DNA of 64,000 bases, taken from positions 62,001-126,000 of the forward strand of contig JAKMXF010000362.1 of assembly GCA_024704765.1 (NCBI GenBank). The letters run 5' to 3'. This DNA comes from Oopsacas minuta (lineage: Eukaryota > Animalia > Porifera). The first letter of the stretch is position 1; each line of letters opens with the position of its first letter. The translations under genes and the position numbers were made by a program. Below, piece by piece: positions 1,060-41,192 of this stretch. The notes below the pieces were generated by a model. The model searched no databases, was not told the origin of the DNA, and worked only from the letters and a program-made list of their open reading frames with translations.

Positions 1060-1415
1060 GGAACCCGCTCCATTTATGAGGGACTGCACTCATATTTAAT
1101 TGCAAACAAATTACAAATTTCATCGTTATTCTGCATAAAATTCAGTTTTCTCGCTATTTAAAGTGGATGCTGGGACACTCTTGTATAATTAACAATTTAA
1201 CGAATGGCTTGAGGTTGCACATTTAACTGAATTTACAATGGTTAAATTCAATCCTGATTACTTAAATACGAATCTAATGTATATCTGAAATAATGAAAAG
1301 AAGCGCGATTGGAGTGCGGTCCATTTTTCCTGGGAGCAGGAGCCGGGGTCCACTCCTTTTCTTGAGTTAGGGGTGTAGGTACGTGGGACTCGGAGCGAGA
1401 GCGCGCTCCAAAATT
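1060..1415. repeat. Dispersed MITE-like repeat, copy 1
   Basis: Shares long colinear blocks with 43921-44292, for example tttaattgcaaacaa...ttattctgcataaaatt and tggttaaattcaatcctgattacttaaatac. Boundaries are approximate. Confidence 0.75.
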
Positions 1416-1571
1416 GAGGGCCGCTTTAAATGCTCTGCTGGCGTCTCACCAAGTCGTTTGGCAGTCACATTATTGTACTTTCGAAATAATGAGTTTGAAC
1501 GTGATTTAGAGTCTTGCAAGGAAACTTATTGGAAACACTCCAAAAGGTTGTCAAAATACTTATCTCGCATT

Positions 1572-2852
1572 ATGGATAGACAGTCACTGAATAGATCCAC
1601 ACAAACTATCGACCTACCAGAAGAGCTAATATTTGTCAAATATAAGTATAGAAGAGGTCCTTATCTGGTCAGTTATAGAGGGTATGAGTATTCGTTACTT
1701 CGTAAGGAACTTAATGTAAGAGAGAAGCGATTGTTATTGTGCTATATTTGTAAAGGAGTAATGTTTGAAGCTAGTATGAATAAAGAAAGTAGGTTTGTGT
1801 GTAGTTCGTGTGCAACTGATGGAGGTAGCGCTTCACCAGTAGAGCCAATTAGAGAGGCTATCTCTGAACTCAGTGCTCGTTGTCCATTAAATATTCGTGG
1901 TTGTGAGTGGGTAGGTACTATAGCTATATTGAAGACTCATATCGAGAAGTGTGATTATCTGTTTACAGAATGTCCTTTAGAATGTGGTAATTCAATGTTA
2001 CTTAAATTTATGTCAGAACACACTGAAAGTAGTTGTGAAGAAAGAATCATTTCTTGTGACTTATGTCCTATTTCAATCAAAGCAAAATGGCTCTCTCAGC
2101 ATTTAGGTGAATGTCCTAACTATTTAATAAATTGCAATAAATGTCAAGAGATATTACACAGGCATTATCTTCATCATCACAAATCTGCTTCATGTCAGTT
2201 TAGATTTGTTGAGTGTCCTTATGCTAAATATGGTTGTGCAGATAAATTATTATTTTGTGAACTCGACAAACATGTTCAAGATAATAAAGACCAACATCTC
2301 AGAATCTTAGAATCTTCTCATAAACAACTGGAACAGAATTACAGTAAAGAAATTACCCAATTAAATTTAAAATGTCAAAAAATGATAAGTTTCATGTATT
2401 CTGAACAAGTTCAGATTAGCTTTCCTTGCAATCTTACCGATATAAATCACCTGCGTGTACGACACAGTAACATATCTGCTCAAAATGTTAAGTTTGAATA
2501 CAACAACGAAATTTTACACCTCCACATTATCCGAAAACAAAACAGATTATATTTTGCTATACTCTTTCCCTCTATTCGTGAGGGCAGTGTTACGACACTC
2601 CTCATCAATCAAGATAACATAAACAAATCGGTTTTGTTTCAAAATGTGAAACTAGGCTACTGTTGGCTATTTAATGTATTAACAAAAGATTATTCTAATG
2701 TTGTCCCCAAAGAGGAACAAAAGGTTATACCTTTCTGCTCAGTTATAACAACTGGTTTGGAAACAAGCCTCTTGCAACCTCCTTATCTAAAAGGAGACAA
2801 TTTCAAGCTACGAATTGTTTTTTTCGATGTAATTGACTTTAGAAATCTTTGA
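1572..2852 (+). CDS. TRAF-like protein: degenerate RING, TRAF zinc fingers, coiled coil, diverged MATH-like C-terminus
   Basis: CxxC...CxxC (CYIC, CSSC), then CPLNIRGCEW-type and CPYAKYGC zinc fingers ending in H-x3/4-C, and a C-terminal PYLKGDNFKLRIV. First ATG is at 1572; the GTG extension from 1383 starts inside a repeat. Confidence 0.8.
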   Translation: MDRQSLNRSTQTIDLPEELIFVKYKYRRGPYLVSYRGYEYSLLRKELNVREKRLLLCYICKGVMFEASMNKESRFVCSSCATDGGSASPVEPIREAISELSARCPLNIRGCEWVGTIAILKTHIEKCDYLFTECPLECGNSMLLKFMSEHTESSCEERIISCDLCPISIKAKWLSQHLGECPNYLINCNKCQEILHRHYLHHHKSASCQFRFVECPYAKYGCADKLLFCELDKHVQDNKDQHLRILESSHKQLEQNYSKEITQLNLKCQKMISFMYSEQVQISFPCNLTDINHLRVRHSNISAQNVKFEYNNEILHLHIIRKQNRLYFAILFPSIREGSVTTLLINQDNINKSVLFQNVKLGYCWLFNVLTKDYSNVVPKEEQKVIPFCSVITTGLETSLLQPPYLKGDNFKLRIVFFDVIDFRNL

Positions 2853-3473
2853 TTATAAATTTGTACTCACCATTTTCCAATAGTCCACACTGTAGTCACT
2901 GTTATGTTACAAATTTGGAGTTTGTGAAATTTAATATAGATTTTGACAAAGGCGAGTTTTTTTCGTACATTATTATATAGACTTCACAAAATTCTGTTTT
3001 CATTTTTCTGAAGTAATCTTGTATTAATTGTCTGAATAAGAAGGGACCCTCAGAGGCCATTTTTGCCGATTTACGTACATTTGTGGTATTTGTTCAAAGA
3101 TATATTCCAAAATATACCTTGTATGTATACTCTTTCATGTCCATTTTTTGTGAAGGGCATTTTGTAACCCTGAGCTAAATGCTGGCTTGACCAGCATTTG
3201 GTTGTCTCATCCAGCGGACCAGCCATGTCACACTAAAACCAGAATTTCAAAAAAGTATAAATTCGTTATGGCTGATCAGCAGCAGCTTGGATTATTATCA
3301 TATCAGGAGACAATCTCAGCAAATATATAAGAGCTAAAAATTAGATAAACTTGACCAGCCCACTCGTTTTATGAATATATACAAGATGCTCTGCCCATTT
3401 TCACCAATTTATGCAAAGGTGTATACGACCTGTCGTACTTTGTAATTAATCTCATTAAATAAACACATTAGCT

Positions 3474-30691: not shown

Positions 30692-31628
30692 TTCTTGCTG
30701 AATATATTATGTTTGAAATTGTTAGCAATTGTAATTCGCATTATTTATTTCAATTAGGTTTTATTAATAACGAATGCAAATTATTTGTTCTGTTTTATAG
30801 AATATCTTTTGTACATGAAGTACACACGATCAGGCGCATAGTTACCATAGAGTATAGGGGACTCGTGCCCCCTAAGGGTGGCATAGGGAGGGTAGAGTAG
30901 CTGGAGGCTGTAGGCTCACCGTTGCAGAATAAATTGGAAGAAAATAATATATCACTCGAATTGCCACCACCAGTCCACCACCCCAAATCAATTACCCATG
31001 CAGATATTTACTATTGCATTATTCATACATTGGCCATAAATCAGTCATGGAAAGATCAGTACAGTTAGTGATGGACCGGGATAACACCCCGCTAGGATTT
31101 TCATGTTTTGTCGGGATTTTAAAAATACATAAACATAAGTAAAGTATTCATTCAATACATTGTGAGATATTGTTGGAGGAAATTAACCGAAATTCTGAGG
31201 TTAGAAATAGCTGATCGTTCTAGGCTGGAATTCAAACTTCTATTGCAAAGAAATATCTGAAAAGTAACGGTGAAGGGTAAAATTAAAACTTTTAACGATA
31301 ATACGCTGTATGAGTTTGAATATTAATAGATTCGGAGTTTCATTATATTAATGTGTGCTAGAATTTCCCAGTTCAACCCCGGGATTCTGGTCGATCCCAC
31401 CGGCCCACCACCATCTCAGTCATTCTTAGACCTCTTAAGATTAATTGTATTGTACAAGTGGAAGTACGCATAGTCTAAGGATAAGGGATATAAGGTTTGT
31501 TAGTGGAAAAGGCCCGTACAGTCGAATATGTTTGGTAGTTTTAATTGTTGATATTTTCGGTTGAAAATGTGAATTTGAGAAATGAATTCTATCAAATCTA
31601 TGACTTAAACAAAATTCATAATTTTCTA

Positions 31629-33395
31629 CTATTCAATACATCCTTCAGTTTCCATTAAATCTCTCAATACACTCAAAGTTGATACTATCTCTGTATACAA
31701 TTGAAATGAAGTTTTGGGACTTCTAGATGTAATAGTAGTAATGAAAATGTATATAGAGTCTGACTTAGGGTGTAATCCAACGAAATGTCCATTGAATAAA
31801 GGATAATTTGCACTGAGAGGAAGTGTGGAGTAGATAGAACTAATAGCTAGTTTAGGTTCAATGAACAATTCAAAATGAGAGTTATGAAACAAATCAACAG
31901 ATAAATTCTCTTTCTCCGCTAAATATCTCAGAGCTTGTAGATGCTTAACAAACACATGACCTCCACTAGTCTCAGATAACAATAGTTTGTATGTGTTGGT
32001 AGCTCTTAACATCAGCCTCCATCTCTCTCTATCAGACTGACTGCTTGTTGTCATAGATTCCACAAATGTCTTCATATCCTCACTGACTGTGATCGGATGC
32101 TCTAGACGTCCTTCTCTGAAGCTTCTCATAGAAACAGTTTGATAGCTAGCTGTCAGCTGATTGTACAGCTTATAGTAAGCTAGCTGGATAGCTAGCTGAA
32201 TGAATCCATGGTAATATACTCCATAATTCTTAAACAGGTCTCTTCCAAATTCAGTAAAATCTCCGTCGAAATAATCATAATCTTTATACCAAATATTTAG
32301 CTTAGATTTAGCTAACTTAATCTGTTTATGAGTTCTAGGCGAAATTTCCCATATCAGCTGTTTCACTTTTACTGCTGATTTGAATTGGAATAATTTGTCT
32401 GTAGTAGATGAATCGATTTTGGGAATAGTGCAATAGAAACCTGTTAGTATTCCATCTATCATTGAATGTTCTGAGAAAAATACTTCTAAACCATCTTTTG
32501 TGAATATTGTCTGTAGACCCAATCCATGCCATCTATTGTAATTCTTACAATCCAGACGAATATCTCCAAACGTAACTCTTTTAACACTGTCCCTATCATC
32601 TCCATTAGTACATTCATCTATGCATAGTCCGAATAGACTAGTTTCAATCTCCCTCAAAGAGCTAGCATTGATAGAAGAATCCTGTATCAGCTGTTCTCTA
32701 GCTGATGACCAGCTGTCTCTGTCTAGAGCTGTCAACAGACTCACAGGTGCATGACTCTGTGTCTCCTCACTACTAGAACTCATCACCTGAGATAGTAACT
32801 GGTACATTTCCTCCACACTCAGAGACTTGTTTCCATCAGCCGGGTTGTACACAGGCATTCTGTATATCCTACCAGCATACATCACTATAATGTGTTTGCT
32901 ATGAGGGGAGAATACCTGAGTATCAATTTTAGGTTTAGGCACTCTGTATCCACCAACCAACCGAATGTACTGACTCATGCTCTGTGGAACTCTACCTATC
33001 ATTTCTTGAGGCAATCTCTCATCACGGATAGTCTCCATCAATCTCACCATACTGAAGAGATGCTGGGATATAGCTAGCAGCATTTCTTTGTGAGTAGACC
33101 ATTTCAGTCTAGTTTTAAGTGTAGTTTTACCGTTAGTAAAGAGGAGAGAGTCTCTGTTGGAGAGATATCTGGTGTCTACCCACACACGTGACGCCCAGTT
33201 GTCCGTCTCCTCTGCGAATGTTAACAATCTATTCTGGAGATACACACCCTCTCTCTTTGAAAAGGAGTTTGTAGACTTGATTAGTTGAGAATGCTGAGTC
33301 TGTGTGGTTAGCGGCTTCATAGCTGTCAGGAATCTGTCCAGAGTGTCAGACAGAGCAGGAACAGGTAGTTTGGGGAGAATCTTATAGCGAGACAT
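31629..33395 (-). CDS. Choline/carnitine O-acyltransferase family, copy A (588 aa)
   Basis: LPKLPVPALSDTLDRFL, LLTALDRDSW, NRWHG, catalytic EHSMIDG, IQLAIQLAYYKLY, SMRSFREGR. Confidence 0.88.
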   Translation of the reverse strand: MSRYKILPKLPVPALSDTLDRFLTAMKPLTTQTQHSQLIKSTNSFSKREGVYLQNRLLTFAEETDNWASRVWVDTRYLSNRDSLLFTNGKTTLKTRLKWSTHKEMLLAISQHLFSMVRLMETIRDERLPQEMIGRVPQSMSQYIRLVGGYRVPKPKIDTQVFSPHSKHIIVMYAGRIYRMPVYNPADGNKSLSVEEMYQLLSQVMSSSSEETQSHAPVSLLTALDRDSWSSAREQLIQDSSINASSLREIETSLFGLCIDECTNGDDRDSVKRVTFGDIRLDCKNYNRWHGLGLQTIFTKDGLEVFFSEHSMIDGILTGFYCTIPKIDSSTTDKLFQFKSAVKVKQLIWEISPRTHKQIKLAKSKLNIWYKDYDYFDGDFTEFGRDLFKNYGVYYHGFIQLAIQLAYYKLYNQLTASYQTVSMRSFREGRLEHPITVSEDMKTFVESMTTSSQSDRERWRLMLRATNTYKLLLSETSGGHVFVKHLQALRYLAEKENLSVDLFHNSHFELFIEPKLAISSIYSTLPLSANYPLFNGHFVGLHPKSDSIYIFITTITSRSPKTSFQLYTEIVSTLSVLRDLMETEGCIE

Positions 33396-34228
33396 TTATC
33401 CTTTCCTCTTCCAATTTGTATATTTATTTGTTTATTTGTGTATTTATCAATATCCTCTTTCTTGTAGACTCATTCTGACAGGTGAAAAGCGTTCTTATAA
33501 TCTACTATCGTGATGATCGAGGTAGTTTGTATATAGTGGAATAGGAACTGGGATCAGGGTACATGTTCGAATAATCGAGGTTAAATTGTACATATTTGTT
33601 GGTACATTTAGCATTTTGGATAAATTGTACAATCGATGAAAGCCAACATGTGCAATGTGCCAATGTGTAATAGTATGTATTCGTCCGCATTAGATTTGAA
33701 TACAATTAGTAGAGCTGAGTATCCTCACTATCTTGCGATCATGATCGTGGTATATTTTTGAGGATCGGAGATGATCGCCGATCTTTGTAAAAACAGTGTT
33801 CGAATGGAAGATCACTCTCATTTTCCCGAAAAAATCATATTTTCGCTTGTTTTAAGTAGACAGAAATTGAAATTTGAGAATGCTAGACATCAAAAAATTG
33901 TATTTACAACCTTTATGGTAATTAGACCTGTAGATTTCGCATGACCGCGCCCGCGGACGGACGCAGATGGAGTATCTCCCTATAGCGCGATCTTTTTACT
34001 GTACTAGAATTAGAACTGAACTAACCATAAGACACCTGTATTACATACGCTATATTGTGTAATAGTATAACATATAACTCTAACCAAGAAAATTCCAAAA
34101 CTTGACAGTAGTTACCTTAGCAACAAGTGACGTACATTGGTATTCTCAAATTACACAAGTATAAAATAGAGTCTGTATAGCTAATTAATTTATATTTCTA
34201 ATACATAAAAATAACTCTAATCAATAAA

Positions 34229-34930
34229 ATAGCAACAAATGAGCCCATAAATGCACCAGTTAACGACTTGACACAATTCAATTTTGTCGCTGCCTCCTAT
34301 TTGAGCAGCTGATCGCAAGGAGGGACTCTCTTCTGGGAACCTCAGAGAAATAAAAGAAGTTTATTTATCAAAAGTGAGCATCCGTAAGGAAACAATGGAG
34401 GAACTGGCAAAAACTTAACATCCTTGGAGGAGCTAAGCTTCAAAGTTAACGAGAACAAAGATCTCCATCAACACGTCACTGACCTCTATCAACAGCGTAT
34501 CAAACAGCTGGAGACACCCACCGAAATTCCTGTAGCCCTGCATATCTCGTACCACATTATACAAACTAAAAACTAAAAACTCAGATATCTGAGTTGGGGG
34601 AAGAGAAAGAATGTCTGGACTACTCTCTGAATAAAGAACCTATCCTAGCTGTTGGGGATGTTGGAATGGTAACCATGAATTAGTTGCTGCAGGTCTATCT
34701 CTAGATGAATCAAATCAGTTAATTTACATAGCTGATTGTTATAACCACCGTATTCAAATCGTATTATTTGAGGCAAGGTTCATAACTAGATTAGGACAAA
34801 GTATCTCATGAGACCACATGGCATAGTTGTGACAGATGATAACGTCTTCATTACGGACAGAGTTCTCCACGCTTTTTTGCAGTTTAACAAGCATGATTAC
34901 AAGTTAGTGAAGAGGACTGGTAACAAATGA
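34229..34930 (+). pseudogene. Coiled-coil/NHL family pseudogene between the acyltransferase copies
   Basis: Fragments read FEQLIARRDSLL and GLSLDESNQLIYIADCYNHRIQIV...MRPHGIVVTDDNVFITD. Several frameshifts and stops; the presumed start codon reads ATA. Confidence 0.7.
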
Positions 34931-35541
34931 GAATAACAGGGCCGGCGCCGCCTATAAAAGCTTGTAGATGTCCATGATAATGGATTCTGGGTGTCCGGAC
35001 ACGCAGAGCACGGTGGCTCCAGCCCTGAATATGTCTACGAATATGATTACGAATACGAATACGAAATAAACAAAACGCACGAAACACTGGTTGATGTCCA
35101 TCTTCCATGGTCTGTACCCTCACTTAGTCTGATCAACTATTTGAGCAATTTGGGACTTGGGTGATGGATACTATACTAGTAACACCTTTAGTTATAGGGG
35201 GATAAGGTTGGTGGGTCTTTCAGTTTATAAGTGGGGGCTGGACCTGTTGGGTGGTCATGTATAAATATATATATATATACAATAAACAGAGCGAGCGCCT
35301 AGGTAACTGTAAAGGTGACAAGGGTAACGTTTGTTACAACAGCGTTTGGCTGAGTAAATTCTACAATGAACTGATTGAACTGATTTGTTGTAAATTGTTT
35401 GTTTATTACATATATGAATTATAATAATATGTGCTACATAGGCCCGAAAAGTAGAGCCTGTTACAATGAAAACCTTCTTGAGTAATCGCTCGCAACACTA
35501 GGGAAATACTCAAATAAATACAATAGATACATGCTAATGAG

Positions 35542-35936
35542 TAGGGCATTAGTATCGTGCGATCTCGATCTGCTATTAACCATCGGAGGATGATCACCGA
35601 TCATTTTATAAACAGTGATCGAGTGTAAGATCGGGATCATTTTCCCGAAAATTTTTGATCTTTTTAAGTAAACAGAATTGAAAATTGCGAATCTAGACCC
35701 AAAATGTATGTAATAATTTCATGGCAATCGGACTGGTAGATTTCGCATGTCCGCCCGGGACACACGGACTCCCGCAGCTAATAGAGCATCTCCCTATATG
35801 AGGTGCTTATAAATTCCAGAAATGTGATCGGACAAATGATCGTGATTGTGATCGTGATCCTTTTTGGTGCAAGGATCAGAATCACGATTTCCGATCAGGA
35901 TCTTGATAATTAATCTGGTGATCGACTAATGCCCTA
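35542..35936. mobile_element. Non-autonomous hAT-like element
   Basis: 12-bp TIR TAGGGCATTAGT / ACTAATGCCCTA, with flanks CTAATGAG and CTTATAAG (6 of 8 match). The interior resembles about 33735-33985. Confidence 0.65.
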
Positions 35937-36001
35937 CTTATAAGTGATTCATAATTATCCGCAAGTACAATATAATTATTCCGACTAACTGCTATTAACT
36001 A

Positions 36002-36084
36002 CAGTAGATTCTCGTTAATATGAACACGGTTAAGGAGTATGAATTTTGGCAGTCCCTGGTGTACGTGTTAACGAGAGTCTACAG
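36002..36084. mobile_element. Miniature Tigger-type MITE (83 bp)
   Basis: TA|CAGTAGATTCTCGTTAA...TTAACGAGAGTCTACAG|TA. Confidence 0.6.
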
Positions 36085-36329
36085 TAAATGAAGTCCCGAG
36101 CATTATATAGGATGTCCAAACGTTATGTAACCAAGGGGGGGGGGGGCGCGGGTAATTGAATAACTGAACTAGACCGACATGACTATCAACTAAGACTTTA
36201 CCACCGATTAATCAGGTCGAATTGTTTAGCCAAAGTGGGCCTATTAAGACTGTAAACACATTTACGCACCTACGTAACAATACAGAAGTTATACTGGATA
36301 ATTTAGTTATCGCAGTAATGTATATAAAA

Positions 36330-38111
36330 TCATAGTTTAGAATCTTCTAAAGCTGTATGAGCTTGAGAGGTTAAAATATCCTTCATTTCAAATAAACTAG
36401 ATACTATTTCTCTACACAGCTGGGTTGAAGTCACACTAGTACGAGATAGTATAGTAGTGAGGGTAAGGATAATGTGGTTAGGAGTTGACGAGTATCCAAT
36501 GAAATGTCCGTTGGTGAGGGGAATTGTTCCAAGAAAAGGGACTGATGTGAAAACAGAACTAATAGCTAGTTTAGGTTCAATGAACAATTCAAAATGAGAG
36601 TTATGAAACAAATCAACAGATAAATTCTCTTTCTCCGCTAAATATCTCAGAGCTTGTAGATGCTTAACAAACACATGACCTCCACTAGTCTCAGATAACA
36701 ATAGTTTGTATGTGTTGGTAGCTCTTAACATCAGCCTCCATCTCTCTCTATCAGACTGACTGCTTGTTGTCATAGATTCCACAAATGTCTTCATATCCTC
36801 ACTGACTGTGATCGGATGCTCTAGACGTCCTTCTCTGAAGCTTCTCATAGAAACAGTTTGATAGCTAGCTGTCAGCTGATTGTACAGCTTATAGTAAGCT
36901 AGCTGGATAGCTAGCTGAATGAAACCATGGAAATATACTCCATAATTCTTAATCAGGTCTCTTCCAAAGCTTTTCACATCAACATTACACACATCATAAT
37001 CACTATACCAATTTATCATTTGTTTCTCAGCATTTTCTAAATTGAGCAAACTCTTTTGAGAAAGTTCCCATTTGATTTGTTCTACATTCAAACTAGAATT
37101 TATACGTTTTGTATCATCGAAAGAAATTCCTGGTTCAGGAAGAGTATCAAAGAAGTACGGTACAACACCATCTAATAAGGCGTGATCAGATATCCAAGTT
37201 TTGTAACCATTTTGGGTAAATACAGTAAGTAAACCCAATCCAAACCAACGATTGTAAAATTTGAAATTCTCTCGTATATCCCCGAATCTCTGCATTTTTG
37301 GTATCTCATTATCATCTCCATTAGTACATTCATCTATGCATAGTCCGAATAGACTAGTTTCAATCTCCCTCAAAGAGCTAGCATTGATAGAAGAATCCTG
37401 TATCAGCTGTTCTCTAGCTGATGACCAGCTGTCTCTGTCTAGAGCTGTCAACAGACTCACAGGTGCATGACTCTGTGTCTCCTCACTACCAGAACTCATC
37501 ACCTGAGATAGTAACTGGTACATTTCTTCCACACTCAGAGACTTGTTTCCATCAGCCGGGTTGTACACAGGCATTCTGTATATCCTACCAGCATACATCA
37601 CTATAATGTGTTTGCTATGAGGGGAGAATACCTGAGTATCGATTTTAGGTTTAGGCACTCTGTATCCACCAACCAACCGAATGTACTGACTCATGCTCTG
37701 TGGAACTCTACCTATCATTTCTTGAGGCAATCTCTCATCACGGATAGTCTCCATCAATCTCACCATACTGAAGAGATGCTGGGATATAGCTAGCAGCATT
37801 TCTTTGTGAGTAGACCATTTCAGTCTAGTTTTAAGTGTAGTTTTACCGTTAGTAAAGAGGAGAGAGTCTCTGTTGGAGAGATATCTGGTGTCTACCCACA
37901 CACGTGACGCCCAGTTGTCCGTCTCTTCTGCGAATGTTAACAATCTATTCTGGAGATACACACCCTCTCTCTTTGAAAAGGAGTTTGTAGACTTGATTAG
38001 TTGAGAATGCTGAGTCTGTGTGGTTAGCGGCTTCATAGCTGTCAGGAATCTGTCCAGAGTGTCAGACAGAGCAGGAACAGGTAGTTTGGGGAGAATCTTA
38101 TAGCGAGACAT
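36330..38111 (-). CDS. Choline/carnitine O-acyltransferase family, copy B (593 aa), C-terminal SKL
   Basis: Same motifs as copy A; the catalytic region reads DHALLDG; the protein ends ...EDSKL. Confidence 0.88.
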   Translation of the reverse strand: MSRYKILPKLPVPALSDTLDRFLTAMKPLTTQTQHSQLIKSTNSFSKREGVYLQNRLLTFAEETDNWASRVWVDTRYLSNRDSLLFTNGKTTLKTRLKWSTHKEMLLAISQHLFSMVRLMETIRDERLPQEMIGRVPQSMSQYIRLVGGYRVPKPKIDTQVFSPHSKHIIVMYAGRIYRMPVYNPADGNKSLSVEEMYQLLSQVMSSGSEETQSHAPVSLLTALDRDSWSSAREQLIQDSSINASSLREIETSLFGLCIDECTNGDDNEIPKMQRFGDIRENFKFYNRWFGLGLLTVFTQNGYKTWISDHALLDGVVPYFFDTLPEPGISFDDTKRINSSLNVEQIKWELSQKSLLNLENAEKQMINWYSDYDVCNVDVKSFGRDLIKNYGVYFHGFIQLAIQLAYYKLYNQLTASYQTVSMRSFREGRLEHPITVSEDMKTFVESMTTSSQSDRERWRLMLRATNTYKLLLSETSGGHVFVKHLQALRYLAEKENLSVDLFHNSHFELFIEPKLAISSVFTSVPFLGTIPLTNGHFIGYSSTPNHIILTLTTILSRTSVTSTQLCREIVSSLFEMKDILTSQAHTALEDSKL

Positions 38112-39941
38112 TTATCCTTTCCTCTTCCAATTTGTTATTACAAACAGTTATCTAAATTTTGAAAGAACTAATTTCAAACCAAAATGAAATGAATATCAAT
38201 CATAGATAGTTGGAAATTGAAATGTAAGAGGGACGAATGGAGTTGGCATAGACTTTGTTCTAGCTAGTACGTGTTGTTATTAGTGCAAATCTTGCTCACA
38301 CTTCAGGGGATATATCGGAATATCGCTTTAGTAATTGAAATATTATTCCAATGCTCTTGACACAAGCAGTGGGCATACCAAGCACCTTTGGTACCCGGGA
38401 CGGAATCTGAAGTTGGTACCCCGTTTTTCTGTATTTTATACAATATATAGCTAAGTATATTGTACATATTCCAGGTGGCCAAAAATACGGGCCCCGTGCA
38501 CTTTCAGGCCAACTTGAAACCATTCGTCAAACAAGGCAATAATAATATATTTATTTCCGTTTTTTTGGCCCGCCCTGTATGTGAGATGGTTATTTTCCAA
38601 CATATGTTTTGAATGTTATATAATGTAGGCATGATGAGTTTATTTTGTTAGATAAACTTATTATAGTTTAGCGGGTATGTATAGGAACGCAGTAACTACA
38701 TCTGGGATCTCAAAAATATAATAATATAATGTATCTCTCTCAGTCAAGGTTGGCACCCCCCTTGGTACGCCACTGGTCACAAGTTCATAGTCACTGCGAA
38801 TATCAGTAGTGAAATATGAGCCACACTTAACGTAATTCGTGAATGAACTGAACTTGCGTCAATTAGAGATGAACTGAATTGCATTCATTCAGTACGTTCG
38901 TAAACCTTTCATTCCCTGTGTCTTTCCTCATGTCTATTTCATATCACGCCTCAACCTGACGCTTTGAGTAATCAAATTCTGGGCTATTGAATACGTTACC
39001 ACATGCGGATATCGCATGCGATAATGAAAATGAATATAGCCAAACATCCATTTTTTATAATCAATTTTTGTCCCGTATTTACAAATTTGTCATGTATATT
39101 CGTATAATTCATCTCTTAGCCGATGTAGATGGCTTTTTAAGTACTAGATGTATGTGCCATTTGTACTGTATGACCCAGTGCAAAAATTCCAAAATACAAT
39201 AATTAGAGCAATGTAATTAACTACGTGATTCGAAAAATATCAAACTCATCAACGAGATGTCGCTTCAAAAGACCCTAGAAAGAACAAAGAGAAATATTAC
39301 TTTAATCTAGCATTAAAACTTTGCTCAATAATAATAATAATAATGAGACAAATTACATTTTACTTACCACCTGTAAATACTATCATTTTGTATATGGTTA
39401 TTAAAACAGAGGAAGTGATGTAAATATTAATGAGCTGTGATATCATGTTGTACATATTCATACAACGAGAGCGATAAGAGTGAGCTGGTAAAAATTTATA
39501 GACTTTTTAGCTCTTATATATTGAAATTGTCTCATGTTATGCTCTTATGGAGATGATAACCCAAGCTGTATTTGCCATGAAGAATTTAGACATTTTTGGA
39601 ATGCTGGTTATAGTGTGACTTGCCTGGCCCGCTGGTTGGGCCAACTTAATGCTGGTCACTTGGTGTCTATGGAATACCTTTTTCACTTGTGAACCTATTA
39701 TTACCTAGTACGTTATACATGGAAATTAATCATTCAATGAACAGAATATTAACATCACAATTGCTAGAATGAAATATCCTATGAAAATTTTGGAATTTAG
39801 CCCTGACCCTTTAAGATATTTTCTGGGATATCATTCCGTCCCATTCCTGAAATATACCCAGTACAGAATTGTCCCATTTCGTATTGGGTATATTATCATC
39901 TATTTCAATACGATATTAGTGTCAATCATTAGATTAGTATA

Positions 39942-41192
39942 ATGACAAATGGTGAATATGAAATACACGATGAACTAGACGTACTATCTCCTGTTCCGAT
40001 AGTCTCCTTCCTCCACTCTAACTCTCCTCTACCTCCTGACGTCATATCAGATCCTAACTCCTCTAGAATGCAATTCTCTATCACTCCTCCTACAGACTCA
40101 TCTGATACAATATTCACTGCTACAACAAGCAATATGACGTATGAAGCTACACCCCTTACTAACCAGATCACTAGCTACTATATAGCTGTTAGAGATAAGA
40201 ACTCAGGTAATATTAGACTCCTCCCTACTCAAATATTCCAACTCTCTCCTAAGATTAAATCCAGACAGCTAACCTCATCACCTACTGAGGAGAAGGAAGA
40301 ACGTACTTACAGACAGAAACAAGCTGAACTAGTACGTGCTTTCGGAAGTTCTAAAGATAAGAGAAAGCTAGCCTCTGCTGAGCGTAGTGCTAATGATCCA
40401 GAGCTATTAGCAGATACTATAGGACAAGCTCTTAGCTCTGTGAAGCAATCAGAGAATGGAGTGATTGAGGATAACACGTCTGAGTCTCTGCTCCTTCCTA
40501 TACACCATCCTGATACCGATCAACCAGCTGACATTTATCTGCTGGAAGAGTTGATACCTGAGACAGTACTAAACTCAGTGTCTAGCTACGCGCGGGAGAT
40601 ACGAACAGCTGATATCCAGCTGTTAAAGGAGTGGAGAAAGGAAGGGAAGTATCAGAGTTATGTATTGTCGTGGTTTAATGAAGAGCGATTGAATCAACTG
40701 AAGGAACACTCAAGATATCATTACAAACCTCTATTGAGAGGATTAGTATGTCTACACTTCTTGCTAGCATTCTATCTCATTCCTATCCGTAAGAAATACA
40801 GCTCTAGTCAGCTGATAGAAGATGTGGATTTCTTTCCTGTAGAACTCAGGGATTTCTGTCTTGCTTCATTCGCTGATAAGAGCGCTGGCATAAGCGAGGG
40901 TAAAGCTTACTCTCTCAGTAAGAAACTCAAAGACAAGCTATTACTATTCATAATTACTATATCTGTAATATTAGAAGATTATAAGATGGATCCTAGTATC
41001 CTTATATCTAATCTTCAAATACAGCCAGATTCAGCAAGGAAATATTTTCTATCTGTTGGGTGTAAATTCGTCTCAAACTTCCCTAAGAAACGGAAAATAG
41101 AAGAAGGAGATTCTAGTGATGTCTCTCTCAAATTATTTCTACCAGCTCCACTCCAGTTACCAAAGAGATCTTTTTTTAGAAAAAAGTTTTGA
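39942..41192 (+). CDS. POLR1E: RNA polymerase I subunit RPA49/PAF53-like
   Basis: L-x-x-AFGSSKDKRKL, P-x-H-x4-QPADIYLLEELIP, KLKDKLLLFI, YFLSVGC and a basic C-terminus match the A49 family as recalled. Confidence 0.75.
   Translation: MTNGEYEIHDELDVLSPVPIVSFLHSNSPLPPDVISDPNSSRMQFSITPPTDSSDTIFTATTSNMTYEATPLTNQITSYYIAVRDKNSGNIRLLPTQIFQLSPKIKSRQLTSSPTEEKEERTYRQKQAELVRAFGSSKDKRKLASAERSANDPELLADTIGQALSSVKQSENGVIEDNTSESLLLPIHHPDTDQPADIYLLEELIPETVLNSVSSYAREIRTADIQLLKEWRKEGKYQSYVLSWFNEERLNQLKEHSRYHYKPLLRGLVCLHFLLAFYLIPIRKKYSSSQLIEDVDFFPVELRDFCLASFADKSAGISEGKAYSLSKKLKDKLLLFIITISVILEDYKMDPSILISNLQIQPDSARKYFLSVGCKFVSNFPKKRKIEEGDSSDVSLKLFLPAPLQLPKRSFFRKKF

Follow-up and report, generated by a model that had tools for sequence, protein, structure and literature searches.

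How can two neighbouring genes be nearly letter-for-letter identical along some segments and deeply diverged along others of the same uninterrupted reading frame? The question is raised by a pair of acyltransferase genes in a 64,000-nucleotide stretch of the glass sponge Oopsacas minuta (assembly GCA_024704765.1, contig JAKMXF010000362.1, positions 62,001 to 126,000 of the forward strand), hereafter the window, in whose numbering all O. minuta coordinates below are given. Copy A (31629–33395) and copy B (36330–38111), both on the minus strand, are intronless open reading frames (ORFs) of 588 and 593 amino acids belonging to the choline/carnitine O-acyltransferase family (PF00755); A ends in -CIE and has no type 1 peroxisomal targeting signal (PTS1), and B ends in the PTS1 -SKL. 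They form direct repeats in tandem, 4.7 kb from start to start, with LMF1 on one side and RPA49 on the other. Very probably, the pair goes back to an old duplication on which recurrent interlocus gene conversion has acted, confined to two segments of the gene.

A DNA alignment of the two loci, flanks included, resolves four blocks with sharp borders, all on the minus strand. Block I (32594–33419 in A, 37310–38135 in B) comprises 24 bp of 5′ flank and codons 1–267 and is homogenised between the copies, with 4 differences in 826 bp; three of these (ORF nt 186, 471 and 585) are synonymous and the fourth (nt 622) gives Ser208Gly. Directly upstream of this short leader, 19 of the next 31 positions differ. 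Block II (32205–32593 in A, 36924–37309 in B; codons ~268–397) is a diverged island, A-type and ancestral-like in copy A and B-type in copy B, and contains the His310 codon (32466–32468 in A, 37182–37184 in B) within active-site segments that read FFSEHSMIDG and WISDHALLDG, respectively. Block III (31836–32204 in A, 36555–36923 in B; codons 398–520) has 0 differences over 369 bp. Block IV, the second island, runs from codon 521 to codon 588 and the stop in A (31629–31835), with Ala529 at 31809–31811 and no PTS1, and from codon 521 to codon 593 and the stop in B (36330–36554), with Gly528 at 36528–36530 and the SKL codons at 36333–36341. The two islands are 40–65% identical between the copies, or ~50–75% in 60-column windows, and beyond the ORFs the flanks do not align in the comparison of both loci.

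A first-pass annotation, made from the letters of the window, had described this mosaic, and alignment confirms it in each particular: the extent of block I with its 24-bp 5′ flank and about four differences, the match of 31836–32204 to 36555–36923 without any difference, the strong divergence of the remaining blocks, and the contrast of EHSMIDG with DHALLDG at the catalytic His in the first divergent block. The pattern is far from what chance would give. Over 1761 aligned sites A and B differ at 263, with a longest identical run of 369; when the variable sites were shuffled, none of 10000 permutations reached a run of 369 bp, and the longest shuffled run was 96. Whole-gene identity between the copies is 80%, a figure that is meaningless for dating these sponge paralogs or for building trees of them.

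Does the mosaic extend beyond O. minuta? Eleven close relatives were collected from ENA assemblies by protein search and their contigs then compared. Three of the assemblies carry the pair, here called Sp1 (ERZ25071281), Sp2 (ERZ25069837) and Sp3 (ERZ26869290), and each has a gene of 588–590 amino acids without SKL (A-type) and one of 592–593 amino acids ending in SKL (B-type). Three outgroup assemblies (ERZ25072730, ERZ25072740 and ERZ25766962) have one gene each, at another locus, with A-like islands and an -SKL end. In Sp1 the gene order of the window is conserved (methyltransferase, LMF1, A, B, RPA49), and this arrangement, methyltransferase–LMF1–A on one side and B–RPA49 on the other, indicates that the loci are orthologous. 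A look-up of the exact copy-A protein in other public assemblies returned no match.

In a codon alignment of the four pair-bearing taxa, A and B of the same species are 95–100% identical in blocks I and III and 30–66% identical in blocks II and IV. Between species the shared blocks are only 64–97% identical; paralogs within a species are thus more alike than orthologues between species, synonymous sites included, which supports segmental concerted evolution. The block borders recur at nt −25 to −1, 784–802, 1177–1192 and 1555–1560, a spread within ~15 codons, and in each of the four taxa the tracts are longer than expected by chance (0/10000 permutations apiece). A small third island at codons 92–98, which coincides with the first beta strand (E90–96) of a predicted structure of copy A, is type-specific in Sp1 and Sp2 and overwritten in O. 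minuta and Sp3. Its loss in two of four lineages indicates that the tract histories are independent and that short islands can be lost.

The phylogenetic signal splits along the same borders. In the maximum-likelihood tree of blocks I and III, A pairs with B in every species (support 87–100), whereas the tree of blocks II and IV recovers an A clade (96/99) and a B clade (97/98). Approximately unbiased (AU) tests reject type clades in I and III (p of 1e-67 and 1e-60) and, conversely, within-species A and B pairs in II and IV (p of 3e-4 and 4e-53). In blocks I and III, the synonymous divergence (dS) separating A from B is 0.012 in O. minuta and 0.057, 0.055 and 0.040 in the three related taxa Sp1–3, compared with 0.25–0.92 for the same blocks between species; in blocks II and IV, A and B stand at 1.4–2.4. 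The flanking LMF1 and RPA49 genes differ at dS 1.4–1.5 between O. minuta and Sp1–3, and RPA49 at 0.37 between Sp2 and Sp3. Type clades in the islands, species clades in the shared blocks and homogenisation at synonymous sites together imply that the duplication is old and that the pair has been homogenised repeatedly, lineage by lineage.

Two explanations that dispense with conversion fare poorly against these data. We give next to no credence to the first, in which extreme purifying selection holds blocks I and III while drift goes unchecked in blocks II and IV: the ratio of nonsynonymous to synonymous divergence (dN/dS) between species is indeed lower in I and III (0.13–0.17) than within types in II and IV (0.20–0.47), but synonymous sites are homogenised as well, the tree of I and III groups by species, and the 24-bp non-coding leader is also identical. 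The second supposes that the gene was duplicated recently and independently in each species and that II and IV then diverged very fast through positive selection or local hypermutation. It draws on the long branch (0.27) of the B-type islands, which are less like the single-copy outgroup genes (40–44% amino acid identity) than are the A-type islands (51–61%). It is extremely improbable, however: across four taxa the islands of each type form a clade of their own, the AU tests reject their joining within species, and island synonymous sites are saturated between types (dS at least 1.4) at a within-type dN/dS below 0.5. The lower outgroup likeness implies that the B-type either evolves faster or represents an older branch, and the within-type ratios of 0.20–0.47 indicate that both versions are maintained, with purifying selection in each type.

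Could the identical blocks instead be a collapsed or cross-polished repeat, the real copies differing throughout? Four assemblies bear on this question. The O. minuta genome was put together with SPAdes (k up to 99) from Illumina reads combined with corrected PacBio reads (PMC10280926). Such hybrid assemblies can merge near-identical repeats, and Sp3 contains an obvious fragment of mixed A/B consensus. The same mosaic with the same borders nevertheless appears in long contigs of Sp1 and Sp2, where one contig carries both genes (698 kb in Sp1 and 166 kb in Sp2; the contig names give coverages of 279x and 81x, respectively); single differences are kept inside the shared blocks in every species; and an artefact of this kind could not make 55% identity into 100%. 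An assembly artefact, the scenario that the first-pass annotation had named as fatal to its claim, is thus very unlikely given the agreement of independent assemblies.

Two of these assemblies have further peculiarities at the locus. Beside B in Sp3 (minus strand, 1364–3055 of the B contig) lies a broken acyltransferase copy whose blocks I and III are A-like and whose block IV is 100% B, and whose block II is a patchwork of 10–40-bp pieces matching A or B, in which the indels of both types occur. We considered this copy as proof of conversion entering the islands and set it aside, the patchwork being most likely a mixed-read consensus artefact. A separate Sp3 contig (7442 bp, ERZ26869290) carries the A gene in a palindrome-like duplication, with two intact A-type copies on inverted 3.37-kb arms that match at 97% and are separated by ~0.7 kb. 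Sp2 (ERZ25069837) has the A-type gene and its flanks on two contigs of 711 kb and 166 kb with an identical protein, representing either haplotigs or a recent segmental duplication.

The direct-repeat arrangement in O. minuta, with copies 4.7 kb apart, would also permit unequal crossing-over, which could homogenise tandem genes in place of conversion. In Sp1–3, however, A and B are arranged head to head, with 8.5 kb between them in Sp1 and 36 kb in Sp2, and are still homogenised, and in all taxa two internal blocks have been homogenised with diverged sequence between them. Two separate internal tracts do not come from single unequal crossovers, and homogenisation with the genes both inverted and in tandem would point to conversion rather than crossing-over, which we regard as quite improbable here. 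The change of orientation lies with copy B: B and RPA49 run in the same direction in Sp1–3, 0.4–0.9 kb apart, and in O. minuta (36330–41192) B is inverted relative to its orthologues, points away from RPA49 and stands in tandem with A.

The history favoured by these observations, an old duplication with recurrent segmental conversion, runs as follows. The duplication that gave rise to A and B is older than the separation of O. minuta from three or more lineages of related glass sponges. Conversion, probably associated with repair and without crossover, has since repeatedly overwritten codons 1–267, together with a few bases of the 5′ leader, and codons ~398–520, independently in each lineage, leading to concerted evolution of these two segments. 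Tracts stop at the ORF start and at the two islands (codons ~268–397, and 521 to the end), which would be too diverged to pair and which carry type-specific features, namely the catalytic His loop, an acyl-pocket strand and the C-terminal targeting signal. Selection would keep the islands apart, and the islands in turn would set acyl specificity and localisation. The outcome would be two isozymes with a common scaffold, an A-type with ancestral-like islands that has lost its PTS1 and a B-type that has kept -SKL and whose islands have evolved faster.

What has preserved the islands is a narrower matter. A homology barrier alone, with no selection on specificity, would leave conversion itself intact and concerns only the cause of the islands. 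Tracts end where identity falls to ~50%, and on the 5′ side they stop at the ORF start, beyond which the flanks can no longer be aligned; identities of 40–60% cannot support heteroduplex formation; and the overwriting of the 7-codon island in two of four lineages is expected if only long diverged stretches resist conversion. The islands, on the other hand, had to diverge first, despite conversion on both sides of them, and they are under purifying selection in both types and coincide with the catalytic loop, the strand of the Met564 position (CrAT numbering; see below) and the PTS1. A barrier acting by itself is possible but doubtful to us, and the islands probably persist through both selection against homogenising and the homology barrier.

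The first-pass annotation had spoken of ongoing gene conversion with selection protecting specificity-determining regions. Conversion is well borne out, by the recurrence of the mosaic in three other assemblies, by the trees, by the AU tests (3e-4 to 1e-67) and by the comparison of dS that the annotation had proposed, at 0.012 in the shared blocks within O. minuta and 1.4–2.4 between A and B in the islands. Protection by selection may be at work as well and would fit the islands, which hold the His loop, the Met564 position and the PTS1 and evolve under purifying selection. Several points weigh against our account or temper it. That conversion is ongoing follows from low dS and not from an observed event. 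Graph simplification in SPAdes may have dropped a few true differences, so that the 100% identity would be slightly inflated. Sp3 is weaker support, with a mixed-consensus artefact at the locus. Selection and a homology barrier are not separable in the islands, and the putative functional differences are read from alignment alone. Finally, G+C content at third codon positions (GC3) shows only a slight increase in the converted blocks of O. minuta (0.45 and 0.38, compared with 0.36 and 0.33 in an unconverted paralog, C), and the single-copy outgroup genes show similar block-to-block differences; GC3 thus gives no clear signature of biased conversion.

What is the content of the islands? Both proteins match Pfam PF00755 over their full length (A 382.5 bits, B 378.8 bits, cut-off 22.3; profile positions 1–565/569 of 574), and the closest solved structures are those of CrAT and ChAT. 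An AlphaFold2 model of A (predicted local distance difference test score, pLDDT, 78; predicted template-modelling score, pTM, 0.81) suggests the two-domain fold of these enzymes, with Foldseek TMq values of 0.83–0.85 to CrAT and 0.86–0.88 to ChAT. The first-pass annotation had proposed mapping the divergent residues onto a CrAT structure; this was done by alignment, in which an index in chain 1nm8 plus 21 gives standard numbering, and it assigns the His loop to block II and the Met564 position and the tail to block IV. His310 of both copies aligns with His343, the catalytic histidine of CrAT (PMC11852590). The motifs EHSMIDG and DHALLDG stand opposite EHAAAEG of 1nm8 and 1t7n, and block II holds both this histidine and the segment after it. 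Block III has, in both copies, Y418, T420, L431 and K484 at the positions of CrAT Tyr452, Ser454, Thr465 and Arg518, residues that we take to bind the carboxylate of carnitine, a role reportedly described by Jogl and Tong in 2003. Only the tyrosine of this set, as found in CrAT proper (EC 2.3.1.7), is kept, and the exchange of Ser for Thr is conservative. The acceptor substrate, by this comparison, may be neither carnitine nor choline in the usual sense.

Block IV begins directly after the STS-motif strand and includes the position of CrAT Met564, which is occupied by Ala in the A-type and by Gly in the B-type of all four taxa (Ala529 and Gly528 in O. minuta). Met564 presumably closes the acyl pocket of CrAT, with Gly553 as its counterpart at the acyl gate of CrOT, and the PDB titles of 1t7n and 2h3w refer to structures of CrAT M564G mutants, which bind longer acyl groups. 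Neither A nor B has the bulky Met564 of CrAT proper, and both would resemble medium- or long-chain enzymes in this respect. To judge from its residues, then, neither copy qualifies as a true carnitine acetyltransferase. At the C-terminus, -SKL is present in every B-type and in the outgroup genes and is missing from every A-type, a distribution that implies loss of the PTS1 in the A-type. A stop read-through that would give A a hidden PTS1 was considered and rejected: in O. minuta and Sp1–3 alike, the sequence beyond the stop has no SKL-like ending in frame. The A-type is thus predicted to be probably not peroxisomal and the B-type probably peroxisomal. Strictly type-fixed residues number only 13 across the four taxa. 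We infer that A and B would be two isozymes built on one scaffold that differ in the lining of the acyl pocket and in peroxisomal targeting.

Downstream of copy A, the stop is a double TAG TAG (31611–31631), and a +1-frame reading across it would end in ...SRKL before a further stop. This ending is not a canonical PTS1, is not present in the other taxa and is probably a coincidence.

A different emphasis would see the uniformity of the shared blocks itself as selected, with a constant scaffold and a variable cassette, such that the N-terminal domain and the acceptor/CoA-binding segment have to be alike in both isozymes, as a common partner or regulator, for instance, might require. If this were true, the islands (the first beta strand, the stretch from the catalytic loop to the following helix, and the last strands with the tail) would be the natural specificity-and-targeting cassette of carnitine acyltransferases, a design kept through the inversion of one gene, a twelve-fold change in spacing and flanking genes at dS ~1.4. 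We consider such a design unlikely. Under segmental conversion of an old pair, the islands would still mark, without any experiment, the parts that the two isozymes need to keep different.

The wider gene family places the pair in context. The O. minuta genome (61.5 Mb, 365 contigs) encodes at least 10 full-length PF00755 paralogs, one of which, on another contig, is named "carnitine O-acetyltransferase-like" by NCBI. Seven of ten end in PTS1-like tripeptides (SKL, AKL or SRL), which suggests an expanded set of putative peroxisomal acyltransferases. Paralog C, also on another contig (G000:C1:67529-69317, minus strand; 593 amino acids), is B-type and ends in -SKL. Its identity to B is ~75% and uniform over the ORF, with no tract, and the alignment reaches only 5 bp upstream of the ATG and 2 bp past the stop; its identity to A is ~77% in blocks I and III and ~50% in II and IV. 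These profiles imply that B and C are of one type throughout and that, in blocks II and IV, A belongs to a separate lineage of greater age. Nothing beyond the ORF of C aligns, so no synteny was found around it; C is an older, dispersed copy that has escaped homogenisation.

Other sources of the islands were sought within the genome. As a possible further donor of the A-specific blocks, a whole-genome DNA search with 31500–32620 matched only A, B and C. Nor do the B-type islands appear to be borrowed from a distant paralog: in BLASTP comparisons of the island peptides with the ten O. minuta paralogs and the relatives from the other assemblies, identities outside A, B and C were 24–39%, and none of the distant paralogs is nearer to the B-type islands than to the A-type islands.

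How does this pair compare with known systems? Segmental concerted evolution across deep splits has been described in mammals for BMP8A/B, DDX19A/B and TUBG1/2 (Carson and Scherer 2009, PMC2720389), which share with the sponge genes an old duplication, exactly two paralogs in many lineages and segments homogenised by continuing conversion. Unlike those pairs, the sponge genes are intronless, their homogenised and protected segments alternate within one exon, and the borders are conserved despite changed orientation and spacing. Islands of divergence under gene conversion are also known from the GOT1 paralogs of Tigriopus californicus (PMC3728101), and mosaic divergence from the tandem HMA4 copies of Arabidopsis halleri (bioRxiv 10.1101/2025.10.29.685298). 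There, too, converted and unconverted stretches form a mosaic in which the islands are candidates for selection for different function. Those mosaics are either of recent origin or restricted to a single species or genus, whereas the sponge islands are common to taxa whose flanking genes have reached dS ~1.4 and map to the catalytic loop, the acyl pocket and the targeting signal.

With vertebrate carnitine acetyltransferase (CrAT) and peroxisomal carnitine octanoyltransferase (CrOT; structures 1nm8, 1ndb, 1t7n, 2h3w and 1xl7) the sponge enzymes share the PF00755 family, the fold and the catalytic His, and as between those two enzymes, A and B differ at the acyl gate position (Met564/Gly553) and in peroxisomal targeting. 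They depart from both in having no Met at the gate in either copy and Tyr/Thr/Leu/Lys in place of Tyr/Ser/Thr/Arg at the binder positions; moreover, CrAT and CrOT are anciently separate genes without conversion between them. Our literature search found no report of segmental concerted evolution for hexactinellids or for carnitine acyltransferases. The pair is an unusually clean new example of a known process, in which converted and protected blocks alternate within one exon of an early-branching animal and their borders are kept across deep lineages and a gene inversion. It also adds to the signs that copy-correction is active in the compact genome of O. minuta.

The window has ~35% G+C and sparse long ORFs, and its animal genes include an ephrin-receptor-like kinase, a lipase maturation factor and the A49 subunit of RNA polymerase I. 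The 2.9-kb spacer between A and B (33396–36329) contains no ORF of 80 amino acids or more and cannot be aligned with the sequence flanking the other copy. Within it lie two copies (33729–33984 and 35553–35798, 72% alike) of a dispersed ~250-bp repeat that occurs at least 39 times in the genome at 67–86% identity, which suggests an element resembling a short interspersed nuclear element (SINE) or a miniature inverted-repeat transposable element (MITE).

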